Shown: positions 39,669 through 55,000, counted from the stretch's first letter. The stretch is DNA of 64,000 bases from Octopus sinensis (GCF_006345805.1 NC_043020.1:12090001-12154000); one strand, 5' to 3'. Notes: generated by a model not told the origin, from the letters alone. Made by a program: numbers and translations.

Positions 39669-40099
39669 ATTTAAAAGCTGTTTATCATGAGCAGTTGTAA
39701 AGAAGAAAGTGAAAGCTGCCTGTCCCTGTGCGCTGCTAACGGCCATGAGGATGCCGAACAGTTTGACAGAATCTCATCCAGCCAGACTCCTGCTGTCTCG
39801 TCTACGACCTGTGCAGAGGTAGCCATCCATCCAAACAAGAGCAAGTCACCGAAAATGTCTCCCAGCAGCAGCAGCAGCAGCTCATCGGATGCTGCAGTTC
39901 TGCAGAGGACTACCATTGCTGATGTGATGACCAAGAGCAAAGACTTTGAGACGTTCCATTTGGCGCCGGGCAAGAAGGCGGACAGCAAATATTACAAAGA
40001 GGAGAGTGCCGAGACTACGAAGGAGAAGAACCGCAACAGTAGTAAGAAGGCGAGCAAGGAGAGCGGGAAGCCGTATTCCGGCAAGGAAGGTGTAAAATG
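39669..40099 (+). CDS. UPF2: UPF2 first coding exon (ATG 39687; S/K/E-rich low-complexity N-terminus)
   Basis: Acceptor ttttttatctag|39669; in-frame TAA at 39672 upstream of the ATG; GC-rich open frame; donor TG|gtaatt at 40100 (phase 2). No recognisable UPF2 homology in this exon; linked by phase only. Confidence 0.7.
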
Positions 40100-43000
40100 G
40101 TAATTATGGCACTTTTTCTCATTTATTTGGATGTCAGTTCTCAAATGCTTTGATAAAGTAAGAGATCATTTTATGAAAAACATAAATCTGGTTCCGGGTT
40201 CAGTCCCACTGTGTGGCACCTTGGGCAAGTGTCTTCTACTATATACTATAGCCTTGGGCCGATCAAAGCCTTGTGAGTGGATTTGGTAGACGGAAACTGA
40301 AAGAAGCCCGTTGTATATATGTGTGTATATATATATATATATGTATGTATGTATGTGTGTGTGTGTGTGTGTGTGTGTGTGTGTGTGTGTGTGTGTGTTG
40401 TGTGTGTGTGTGTATGTATGTATGTATGTATGTATGTATGTATGTATATGTGTGTGTATGTATGTTTGTGTGTCTGTGTTTGTCCCCCCAACATCGCTTG
40501 ACAACCGATGCTGGTGTGTTTACGTCCCCGTAACTTAGCGGTTCGGCAAAAGAGACCGACAGAATAGGCTTACAAAGAATAAGTCCTGGGGTCGATTTGC
40601 TCGACTAAAGGTGGTGCTCCAGCATGGCCACAGTCACAGGACTGAAACAAATAAAAAGTAAAAAAAAAGTAAAAAGTATCCTGGAAGTGGAAATCTTTAT
40701 TTCTTAGCTCATGATTTAACCCTTTAGCATTTAAACCGGCCATATCCGGCCAAAAGTATTCTGCCTGTTTTATGTTCAAACTGACCAGATCTGGTCTCTC
40801 ACACCAACCCTACAATATTGTTTTAAAAATTAACATCTGCCTCATCAAATTCTCATAGTTACAAGATAATGCACTTAAACTGGCCATATCTGGCCAAAAG
40901 TATTCTGCCTGTTTTATGTTCAAACTGACCAGATCTGGTCTCTCACACCAACCCTACAATATTGTTTTAAAAATTAACATCTGCCTCATCAAATTCTCAT
41001 AGTTACAAGATAATGCACTTAAACTGGCCATATCTGGCCAAAAGTATTCTGCCTGTTTTATGTTCAAACTGACCAGATCTGGTCTCTCACACCAACCCTA
41101 CAATATTGTTTTAAAAATTAACATCTGCCTCATCAAATTCTCATAGTTACAAGATAATGCACTTAAACTGGCCATATCTGGCCAAAAGTATTCTGCCTGT
41201 TTTATGTTCAAACTGACCAGATCTGGTCTCTCACACCAACCCTACAATATTGTTTTAAAAATTAACATCTGCCTCATCAAATTCTCATAGTTACAAGATA
41301 ATGCACTTAAACTGGCCATATCTGGCCAAAAGTATTCTGCCTGTTTTATGTTCAAACTGACCAGATCTGGTCTCTCACACAACCCTACAATATCGTTTTA
41401 AAAATTAACATCTGCCTCATCAAATTCTCATAGTTACAAGATAATGCACTTAAACTGGCCATATCTGGCCAAAAGTATTCTGCCTGTTTTATGTTCAAAC
41501 TGACCAGATCTGGTCTCTCACACCAACCCTACAATATCGTTTTAAAAATTAACATCTGCCTCATCAAATTCTCATAGTTACAAGATAATGCACTTAAACT
41601 GGCCATATCTGGCCAAAAGTATTCTGCCTGTTTTATGTTCAAACTGACCAGATCTGGTCTCTCACACCAACCCTACAATATCGTTTTAAAAATTAACAGC
41701 TTCCTCATCAAAATCTCATAGCTACAAGATAATGCATGATTAGTTCAAAACAATGTGGATGAAGAAGCATTAATTTTGGCAGAATAATGCGAACACTAAA
41801 GGGTTAAATATGCATACGTGCATAAGGCTGTGACAAAATGCTTAACACCATTTCTTCTGGCTCTCTATGTTCCCGGTTCAAATCCCACCAAGGTCAACTT
41901 AGCATCTCATCCCTTTAGAGTTGATAAAATAAAGTATCAGTCAAGCAATGGGGTTGGTGTGATGTGATCAGCTTGCTTCGTCCCCCTCAGAATTGCTTGC
42001 CTTGAACCCTACAGTCCTGTTTATGGTGATGTTGTGATCCCAGTCACATGACCTGGAAACAGTAACCATCCTTAAGGTTCAAGTATGTGTGATGCATACA
42101 TGTTGTATGTGTATGAATATCATGTGAATATGCCAAGTCCACTCAGCTGGCAAAAATGAGCTGGCCTTGTTACACTCTATGTTGTTGAATTTCCCTGAGA
42201 ACTATGTTAAGGATACATGTGTCTGTGGAGTGCTCAACCACTTGCATGTTAATTTCATGAGCAGGCTGTTCCATTGATCGGATCAACTGGAACCCTCATC
42301 ATTGTAACTGATGGAGTGCCAGTTATTATTATCATTATTATTATTATTGTTATTATGCCAAGTACAAAGGCAGTGAATTGGCAGAAACGTTAGCATGCTG
42401 GGCGAAATGCTTAGCGGTATTTCGTCTGCCGCTTCGTTCTGAGTTCAAATTCCACCGAGGTTGACTTTGCCTTTCATCCTTTCGGGGTTGATTAAATAAG
42501 TACCAGTTCCGCACTGGGGTTGATATAATCGACTTAATCCGTTTGTCTGTCCTTGTTTGTCCCTTCTGTGTTTAGCCCCTTGTGGGTAGTAAAAAAATAG
42601 GTATTTCCTTTACCACTAAGTCCTGAGTTCAAATTCCACAGAGGTTGACTTTGCCTTTCATTCTTTTGGGGGTCAATAAAGTACCAGTTGCGTACTGGGA
42701 TCGATCTAATCAACTGCCCCCCCCTCTCCCAAAGTTTCAGGCCTTGTGCTTATTATAGAAAGGATTATTATGCCAAGTACAGCAGTATCCAGCTTTGTCT
42801 GGATTTAGTAACTGCAATAACTAGAGATGGTTTAGGGTTTATCTTGGAAGGGCGGCGAATTGGCAGAAACGTTAGCATGTTGGGCGAGATGCTTAGCGGT
42901 ATTTCGTCTGCCGTTATGTTCTGAGTTCAAACTCCGCCGAGGTCGACTTTGCCTGTCATCCTTTAGGGGTCGATAAATTAAGTACCAGTTACGCACTGGG

Positions 43001-52000: not shown

Positions 52001-55000
52001 CATGCTGGAGCACCGCCTTTAGTCGAGCAAATCGACCCCGGGACTTATTCTTTGTAAGCCCAGTACTTATTCTATTGGTCTCTTTTGCCGAACCGCTAAG
52101 TGACAGGGACGTAAACACACCAGCATCGGTTGTCAAGCAATGCTAGGGGGACAAACACAGACACACAAACTCACATATATATACATATATATGACAGGCT
52201 TCTTTCAGTTTCCGTCTACCAAATCCACTCACAAGGCATTGGTCGACCCGGGGCTATAGCAGAAGACACTTGCCCAAGATGCCACGCAGTGGGACTGAAC
52301 CCGGAACGATGTGGTTGGTTAGCAAGCTACTTACCACACAGCCACTCCTGCCCTTGCGAATAAAAAAAAAAGAATTGTTTGATACAGTTAAAGTGAACTG
52401 TACAATGTTGTTCTTTTGAACCCTTAGTAATGGTCTATAAAATAATGAGCTTCTCTGATGGTGATATATTATTATTTATGATTTTATAAATTTTATCTGT
52501 CTTCATAATTGCTATTTTCAATCTAAGACTTAAATTTCAAACACAGTAACCATGGCAACAACTTCCATCGAACCATTTTATTTTTGTTGTTTATCTCCTG
52601 ATGCTATCAATCTGTTTATGAAGAAATGATCAGAGGTTTTGAACAAATTTCCGTTTTATCTGTGATTCTTTTTTTTTTTTCTCTTTGTAAAATCTCAGAC
52701 AGAAACATTATTGAAAAATAATGTGATTTTAAACAGACATTTTATTGTTCCTTGGAAATGTTTTCTAATTTTTGAAACCATCATAATTACAACTGAAAGG
52801 TACACTTGCATCTATTGATGATGAGGATGATGAGGATGATGTAAACAAGCTACTTATCACACAGCCACTCTTGCGCCTACTATTACATTCCTGAATAAAA
52901 CAGAATGCAGTTTTCTTGTTTTTAACTTTAAAATGTTATTTTTAACTTAATTCTAAAGAAATGATTTTTTTTAATTATTAATCAATCATGGATTAAAACA
53001 TGATGAAAATTTGTCTGTTATTGTATGTTTATTTTTGTCTTTGTTTCTTTGTTTTGATCTGCTCCCCTCCTTGCATTCCACAGAGGTGTTGGCAGCCTGA
53101 CTAGTGCTGCTTACAGTCCATTGAAAGCTGGCAAGGAGCCTCGGGGTGTCGAGATGAAGTCAGCTGCTGAACTAGAGGCTCTGTGGCAGAAGGAAGAGGA
53201 GGAAAAGAGGAAGTTGGAAGAAGAAAAAAAGAAGCAGGAAGAGGAGATACGCCTACAAGAGGAACTTCTGCGGGTCAGTCATACATTTTTTTATCTCTCT
53301 TGGGAAGCACTCCGTTGGTTACGACGACAAGGGTTCCGGTTGATCCGAATCAACGGAACAGCCTGCTCGTGAAATTAACGTGTAAGTGGCTGAGCACTCC
53401 ACAGACACGTGTACCCTTAACGTAGTTCTCGGGGATATTCAGCGTGACACAGAGAGTGACAAGGCCGGCCCTTTGAAATACAGGTACAACAAAAACAAGA
53501 AGAAAGAGCGAGAGAAAGTTGTGGTGAAAGAGTACAGCAGGGATCACCACCGTCCCCTGCCGGAGCCTCGTGGAGCTTTTAGGTGTTTTCGCTCAATAAA
53601 CACTCACAACGCCCGGTCTGGGAATCGAAACCGCGATCCTATGACCGTGAGTCCGCTGCCCTAACCACTGGGCCATTGCACCTCCACTTACCAGGATAGT
53701 ACTGGAATATTAAATTGACTGCATATTTTATATTTTATCAACCTCAGAAGAATGAACAGTGAAGTTGACTTAAGAAAACTTTAATATCAGATCATTAATC
53801 CTTTTGTTACCATATTCATTTTGAGATGATCTGTGTTTCTTTCAATTAATTTCAAATATAACAAAGGATTTGGTAAAATGACTTAGTTGTCATTAAGCTG
53901 GTGTTAGGAACATAAATTGTGACCTAAGGTTTAGTGGAAGATTTTAATTCAAAACTTATGAAAAGAAAACATTTGTACTATAGAGCCAGTGGCATTTCAG
54001 CCGGGTTGGTATCAAAAGGGTTAAGGGATGTAACTAAATGATTGTTTCAAATTTTTGCTACAAGGCCAACAATTTCTGGAGATGGAGTTAATTGATTACA
54101 TCAACCCCTGTACTTAACTGGTACTTTATTTTATTGATACCAAATGAATGAAAGGCAAAATTGACCTCAGTAGTATTTAACCCTTTAGTGTTTAAACCGG
54201 CCATATCAGGCCAAAATTGTCTTCATGTTTTATGCTCAAACCAGCCAGCTCTGACCTCTCACACCTACCCTACAAAGTCATTCTAAAAATAAACAGGGTC
54301 ATCATCAAAATTTCAAGGTTACAAGATGCTGTACAATTAATTTAAAACAATGTAATTAAACAGGCTTTACATTTGACAGAGTAATCTGAATGCTAAAGGG
54401 TTAAACTAAGAATGTAAAGCTCTGGAAGAAATGCTGCTAAGCATTTTGTCCAGTGTGCTAATGATTCTACCAACCTGCCATCTTTATGTAACTTAATTTC
54501 TCTAAAACTATTTCTCCGCTATTTTACCATTTCTGACGTTTGTTAGTTTTTGAGATTTTTTTGGTTTTTGTTTTATTTTCAGAAGAAGAAAGAAGCTGAA
54601 GAAGCTCAGATTCAAGAAGAATTGGTAGGTTAATTTACCTGTTTCGAGATTTTTATGAAATTAAATTTTTTTGTGTTGTCCGGGGTCAGTGTTGATTAAG
54701 TAGATCTATTTGGAATATGGGATGGAAGCACTCCGTCGGTTACGACGATGAGGGTTCCGGTTGATGCGAATCAACGGAACAGCCTGCTCGTGAAATTAAC
54801 GTGTAAGTGGCTGAGCACTCCACAGACACGTGCACCCTTAACGTAGTTCTCGGGGATATTCAGCGTGACACAGAGAGTGACAAGGCCAGCCCCTTGAAAT
54901 ACAGGTACAACAGAAACAGGAAGTAAGAGTGAGAGAAAGTTGTGGTGAAAGAGTACAGCAGGGATCACCACCATCCCCTGCCGGAGCCTCGTAGAGCTTT

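Follow-up and report, generated by a model that had tools for sequence, protein, structure and literature searches.

Animal coding microexons are exons of at most 27 nt, exemplified by the 18-nt N1 exon of c-src and by the neural microexon program, and PTBP1 exon 11 is an example of an exon whose exclusion leads to nonsense-mediated mRNA decay (NMD). Exon exclusion that triggers NMD is a recognized class of event (NMD_ex; PMC13078869), and NMD factors are themselves under feedback by the pathway: PMC6680220 (section 13) names UPF1, UPF2, UPF3B, SMG1, and SMG5-7 in human, SMG7 and UPF3 in Arabidopsis, and SMG5 in Drosophila. We have analyzed a 64,000-nt stretch of the Octopus sinensis genome (GCF_006345805.1, NC_043020.1:12090001-12154000), hereafter the window, which holds the 5' part of the UPF2 gene and, inside its first coding intron, an 18-nt candidate microexon. 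Positions are counted from the first letter of the window, and the exons, splice sites, and conserved block described below all lie on the plus strand.

We consider it very likely that this microexon is a real part of the productive UPF2 mRNA and, with less assurance, probable that the locus is one UPF2 gene that starts at ATG 39687 and includes the microexon essentially constitutively. Translation would begin at that ATG, the first coding exon would end in phase 2 (TG), and the productive mRNA would read through the microexon (49231-49248) and on into the conserved N-terminal part of the protein, followed by the first MIF4G domain. Strong splice sites and a highly conserved flanking intron would allow so short an exon to be recognized. 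Occasional skipping would produce a stop at codon 138, in a transcript that NMD would remove; this would be a by-product and not a designed switch. Inclusion in the mRNA, near-constitutive use, and the NMD sensitivity of the skipped form are what we infer from the comparisons that follow.

Candidate microexon in the 5' part of UPF2

The exon at 39669-40099 is well supported as part of UPF2 by its frame, its splice sites, and its orthologs. It follows the acceptor ttatctag/ (a slash marks a splice junction throughout) and comprises a leader of 18 nt followed by an open frame that starts at ATG 39687 and runs for 137 codons plus TG, ending as ...GGT GTA AAA TG/gtaatt with the donor at 40100-40105. 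Its open frame, called ORF1 here, encodes an N-terminal extension rich in Ser, Lys, and Glu. Exon 3 (53084-53273) follows the acceptor ccacag/AGGTGT, has an open frame from 53085, and reads as coding from its first base.

Frame computation across the direct join 40099>53084 gives TG/A, a stop at codon 138. Because exon 3 begins with A, a productive Octopus mRNA would need the microexon TTTTTTGAACTTCTTCAG, which lies between the acceptor ccttttctattttcttag/ and the donor /gtaaga. Its inclusion turns the junction into TG/T TTT TTG AAC TTC TTC AG/A (Cys-Phe-Leu-Asn-Phe-Phe-Arg), and the frame stays open as ...GVK-CFLNFF-RGVGSL.... The junction strings are thus AAATG-TTTTTTGAACTTCTTCAG-AGGTGTTGG for inclusion and GTGTAAAATG-AGGTGTTGGCAG for skipping. 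Loss of this exon makes a stop even though its length is a multiple of three, because the flanking exons then meet as TG/A. A sequence-only reading of the window had proposed these coordinates and frames, the TG/A stop at codon 138, and the opening of the frame by the microexon; all were reproduced by recomputation. A detail that this reading did not mention is that the GTAA of the donor at 40100 doubles as a stop, the unspliced ORF terminating in TGG TAA (40098-40103).

Splice sites were scored with a simple log-odds matrix of generic metazoan frequencies entered by hand, so the scores are rough and are those of neither MaxEntScan nor a matrix trained on cephalopods. We listed all AG...GT cassettes of 3-300 nt in the intron (40100-53083) whose length is divisible by three and for which TG, the exon, and A together are free of stops. 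Among the 573 stop-free, frame-restoring cassettes obtained, only 49231-49248 had good sites at both ends, with an acceptor score of 4.9 and a donor score of 7.4, the highest of any donor scored in the gene. When the intron was replaced by mononucleotide shuffles, 1 of the 100 matched or beat it at both ends. The sole other cassette with both sites at 2 or above, 51454-51606 (153 nt), was much weaker (2.7 and 2.3) and was rejected. On the same scale, the donor at 40100 scores 1.3, a donor at 40090 scores -0.2, and the acceptors at 53084 and 53086 score 6.1 and -0.5, respectively. An in-frame TGA at 49199 makes 49231 the sole in-phase acceptor for the donor at 49249, and a longer version of the microexon is ruled out by the same codon. 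In its size (18 nt, within the limit of 27 nt), its ttcttag/ and /gtaaga borders, and the preservation of the frame, the exon has the properties of a coding microexon.

With the microexon included, an eight-exon model running from 39687-40099 to 61648-61865 has canonical sites throughout and 410 open codons. The Pfam MIF4G domain was detected at residues 252-401 of the assembled product (E = 4.9e-14).

Conservation in two relatives

Two further loci were compared with the window. The first (L001), on the chromosome record CM046624.1, is that of Octopus bimaculoides; it is colinear with the window and 92.8% identical to it over the alignable intron, that is, about 7% different. The second (L002), on an ENA contig (ERZ21867824 ctg113269l), belongs to a more distant relative, in which the UPF2 exons retain 74-83% nucleotide identity with those of the window and the introns are much shorter.

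In O. bimaculoides the microexon and the following gtaaga are identical at 24 of 24 positions (L001:14349-14372). The 18 nt at the end of exon 1 and its donor (GTGTAAAATGGTAATTAT) are also identical, within a surrounding stretch that is variable. The junctions of this species (AAATG/gtaatt at exon 1 and atag/AGGTGT at exon 3) behave as in the window, the direct join giving TGA and the microexon opening the frame. The microexon lies within the most conserved block of the intron (48982-49420), which presumably carries intronic splicing signals and reaches about 250 nt upstream of the exon. Around 48980-49390, windows of all three sizes tried (200, 300, and 400 nt) rank first across the aligned intron, with 97-98% identity versus the mean of 92.8%, and the block is also above ORF1 (91.8%) and exon 3 (93.7%). 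What stands out in this block is its size. Other explanations of the conservation were tried and dropped: no Rfam match came near its gathering score, the fold z-score was -0.4 and nothing unusual, and there was no long ORF in any frame.

ORF1 differs between the two Octopus species at 28 positions (5/6/17 by codon position), with a dN/dS of 0.14, and both indels are whole codons. The low dN/dS, the excess of third-position changes, and the in-frame indels argue that ORF1 is translated in this frame. Only two relatives of ORF1 turned up among the 1.84 billion representative proteins searched, P0001 from O. bimaculoides and P0122, a 78-aa ORF on L002, and a profile search with ORF1 added no further homologs. 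P0001 is the 136-aa "uncharacterized protein LOC106869789" of O. bimaculoides and was the sole match to a query made of the spliced N terminus; an exact look-up of the 138-aa read-through ORF found no record. For a 237-aa query from the UPF2 region, every target listed by the word-indexed protein search was 219-410 aa long, with none above 67% identity and no full-length UPF2 of any animal. Since this search appeared to favor targets of about the length of the query, its silence on long cephalopod UPF2 proteins is not evidence of their absence. The nearest named relatives of the region, among the matches listed, are regulators of nonsense transcripts 2.

The more distant relative has the same two exons joined in another way. 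Its full ORF starts MSGYKEE (MSSCKEE in the octopus) directly past an acceptor, as in the window, and its exon 1 ends ...AAA TG/GTAAGT, where a consensus donor occupies precisely the homologous site. The exon 3 ortholog follows about 5.7 kb further on, its best acceptor being ttttttccttatcag/C at 15925 (score 4.9), followed by two later AGs that score about -5. The direct join reads TG/C AAT TTT GCA AGC AAC AGT GTT GGA (...NLK C NFASNS VGNL...) and is open through the exon. At the L002 locus, neither the conserved block nor the microexon string has a counterpart; there is no separate exon, and exon 1 joins exon 3 directly. The junction codon is Cys in both cases, TGT in Octopus when the microexon is included and TGC in L002, and the Octopus linker with the microexon is one residue longer than that of L002.

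Exon 3 of L002 contains no in-frame ATG. At the place (L002:16010-16012) where both Octopus species carry the in-frame ATG 53154-53156 (gtcgagATGaag, 69 nt past the junction TGA), it has GTG (Val). Over the 23 codons before this Met position, the window and L002 differ at 5/3/12 sites by codon position, so that 12 of the 20 differences are in the third. The lack of an in-frame ATG, the Val in place of Met, and the conservation of the preceding peptide together argue that the start of UPF2 lies upstream of exon 3. These comparisons bear on several claims of the sequence-only reading. Its assignment of the 39669-40099 exon to UPF2 is borne out by the selection on ORF1 and by the direct in-frame join of L002, its junction-made TGA recurs in O. 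bimaculoides, and the conservation check that it proposed for the microexon succeeds in that species and finds no counterpart in L002.

As to how the two arrangements are related, the end of the octopus intron (ttgcattccacag, 53071-53083) was seen to resemble exonic sequence of L002 (ttgcaagcaacag, within 15925-15948) before a shared GTGTTGG, and Octopus has three extra bases (AGG) ahead of this motif. The comparison suggests that the exon 3 acceptor has shifted its position between the lineages. In L002 the stretch that precedes the homologous AG likewise measures 18 nt. We tried the idea that the microexon is homologous to the beginning of L002 exon 3, taken over its first 18 nt; the lengths are equal, but the identity by eye is about 7/18, which is not significant. 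A separate observation on L002 is that its UPF2 is very compact, with an intron of about 50 nt between the orthologs of 57624-57704 and 60688-60837 (L002:18804-19134) versus about 3 kb in the window.

Alternatives to a constitutive microexon

The annotation of O. bimaculoides divides the locus differently. There, LOC106869789 (L001:10001-10411) is a separate gene whose coding sequence reads through the donor and ends ...VKW followed by TAA, and UPF2 is a protein of 1216 aa with MIF4G and Upf2 domains that starts at L001:18720, equivalent to ATG 53154 of the window. If this were right, ORF1 would be a separate gene or an upstream cistron ending at the TAA or at the junction TGA, UPF2 would start at Met 53154, and 49231-49248 would be the 3' end of a noncoding leader or no exon at all. 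The stop of the unspliced ORF exactly at the donor, the purine at -3 of Met 53154, and the extension of the conserved block about 250 nt upstream of the microexon, where a promoter or leader could lie, all agree with the two NCBI models. Nevertheless, we regard this as rather unlikely, given that L002 joins exons 1 and 3 in frame without a start codon in exon 3, that the stretch of exon 3 preceding the Met shows a coding pattern of change, and that purifying selection acts on ORF1 within Octopus. The first G of the donor accounts for the conserved Trp at the end of the read-through ORF, and the pyrimidine tract plus AG before 49231 and the frame-restoring Cys codon would be coincidences if this were a leader exon. 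Aligners and annotation pipelines often overlook microexons of this length, and the two O. bimaculoides models probably split one gene because the 18-nt exon was missed. Another way of dispensing with the microexon is the join of a donor at 40089/40090 (AAG/gtgtaa) to an acceptor at 53085/53086, giving ...GKEG-VGSL... (GGCAAGGAAG-GTGTTGGCAG). The sequence-only reading was correct that this join is in frame and free of stops, and GT 40090 and AG 53084-53085 are present in both Octopus species. As a real junction it is very improbable: both sites are poor (-0.2 for the donor and -0.5 for the acceptor, a GAG two bases past a strong CAG), O. bimaculoides has an A at -1 of the 40090 donor, which is weaker still, and L002 lacks a GT at the corresponding place, the codons downstream (Leu/Val-Lys, then TG) being conserved as coding.

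The sequence-only reading itself raised the possibility of regulation: the microexon would be alternatively spliced, UPF2 would be toggled between productive and NMD-degraded mRNA, and re-initiation at Met 53154 might give a short UPF2. The stop of the skipped form does lie 189 nt before the next junction, above the >50-nt distance of the NMD rule, with at least five further junctions in the window, and it is far from the normal stop. That a stop upstream of junctions triggers NMD is established in vertebrates and is an assumption for cephalopods; a stop as early as codon 138 would leave a very long 3' untranslated region (UTR), which should likewise provoke NMD in invertebrates, cephalopods again being assumed to follow. 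The junction TGA and the microexon are conserved across two Octopus species, and conservation in the flanking intron exceeds that of the exons, as is typical of regulated microexons. However, conserved flanks are needed anyway to recognize an 18-nt exon, there is no sign that skipping occurs, and the strongest donor scored in the gene together with a good acceptor fits constitutive use. UPF2 is among the NMD-factor mRNAs that are NMD targets in human cells according to PMC6680220 (section 13); nevertheless, the feedback described there acts on productive mRNAs with long 3' UTRs and upstream ORFs, and an unproductive skipped form closes no loop alone. Stabilizing the skipped mRNA would not restore UPF2, because it encodes no full-length protein, barring re-initiation at Met 53154. 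Re-initiation after an ORF of 137 codons is generally inefficient. It is mildly intriguing that the TG/A junction and the ATG 69 nt downstream occur together in Octopus and are both absent from L002, but this is a single lineage comparison. We give very little credence to its extension into a feedback device of the Octopus lineage, in which the junction-made stop and the new ATG would act together, the skipped mRNA rising when NMD falls and re-initiation supplying an N-terminally shortened UPF2 with complete MIF4G domains. The regulatory interpretation as a whole is unlikely.

Inclusion of the microexon in one productive UPF2 mRNA is therefore the reading we retain, and several observations weigh against it. 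The exon 1 donor is weak by the hand-entered matrix (1.3), and the existing annotation of O. bimaculoides reads through it. Identity at 24 of 24 positions is weak in itself (0.93^24 is about 0.17) because the two Octopus species are only about 7% apart in the alignable intron, and other 100-nt stretches of the intron also reach 98-100%. No protein containing CFLNFF was matched in a search that appeared to favor targets of about the query length and so says little, and the resemblance of the microexon to the start of L002 exon 3 is not significant. The inclusion and skipping strings had no match in metagenome data, a collection where octopus RNA would hardly be present and whose silence carries no information. 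Finally, inclusion is predicted from genome sequence. The residual doubt stems from this genomic basis, the standing annotation, and the small distance between the two Octopus species.

Neighboring features and comparison with known systems

Downstream of exon 3, five more UPF2 exons were located in the window. The exons at 55384-55468, which ends in phase 1 and has its L002 ortholog at 17189-17276, and at 56246-56322 together align with a gastropod UPF2 (gapless, 50% identity over 54 aa, E = 2e-15). The exon at 57624-57704 rests on its L002 ortholog, that at 60688-60837 lies inside the first MIF4G domain (Pfam MIF4G and L002 ortholog), and that at 61648-61865 belongs to the same domain (Pfam MIF4G), the gene running on past the window. 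The C-terminal UPF1-binding domain (PF04050, Upf2) is outside the window, as is the 3' UTR; the domain is present, together with MIF4G, in the O. bimaculoides ortholog. Two successive acceptors of the gene, 53080-53086 (cacagAG) and 56241-56248 (tatagAG), each carry tandem AGs at a spacing of two bases, and at both the first AG fits the frame once all exons are located. Use of the second AG at the 56246 exon had been considered, and the need for it vanished when the 55384-55468 exon was found.

Repeats occur in the intron and its surroundings. Large tandem arrays, nearly perfect in sequence, occupy 40727-41736 and 42375-43714, one with a period of 144/431 nt (98% matches) and the other with a period of 483/185 nt (95-96%). 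O. bimaculoides seemingly has fewer copies of the 483/185-nt array, a single stretch at about L001:11436-11736 matching several positions of the window. Two arrays with a 68-nt period (47311-47523 and 48496-48706) have consensus units that look reverse-complementary. They make up an inverted pair with a spacing of about 1 kb, whose end lies about 280 nt before the conserved block. An interspersed repeat (...ggttccgggttcagtcccactgtgtggcacc...) is found at 40190-40290, with copies again at about 53300-53700 and 54770-55110. The copy at 40190 may be an insertion specific to the species of the window, since the alignment with O. bimaculoides breaks at 40190. A second repeat family is represented by near-identical ORFs at 53350-53699 and 54771-55114.

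Under the corrected gene model, UPF2 of Octopus would probably start about 13.5 kb upstream of the start annotated in the sister species and gain about 160 N-terminal residues, and the "uncharacterized protein" gene LOC106869789 would merge into UPF2. The closest system is O. bimaculoides itself, whose orthologous DNA shares the exons, the microexon, and the TG/A junction with the window but is annotated as two genes, LOC106869789 (136 aa) and UPF2 (1216 aa). The case would illustrate that automated annotation can break one gene in two over an exon of 18 nt. It would also be a clean example of an exon with a length divisible by three whose skipping makes a stop (TG/A), in contrast to the direct TG/C of L002.

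Compared with the microexons of other animals, the octopus exon belongs to the same size class, is a multiple of three, and has strong canonical sites and a flanking intron more conserved than the neighboring exons; no UGC or GCATG motif was seen by eye in its flanks. The difference lies in the outcome of skipping, which typically gives a slightly shorter protein in the known cases and a TG/A stop in the octopus. The likeness to alternative splicing coupled to NMD on exon exclusion is that loss of a coding exon would lead to a premature stop far upstream of many junctions. However, the stop in the known examples usually results from a frameshift, whereas in the octopus the frame is preserved and the newly joined exon ends themselves make up the stop. 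The feedback systems of NMD factors share the pathway and the gene family (UPF2) with this locus, but theirs operate on the productive mRNA; if skipping in the octopus were regulated, it would be an unusual way to tune an NMD factor. In all these respects, the UPF2 microexon of Octopus is a new instance of kinds of features that are already known.

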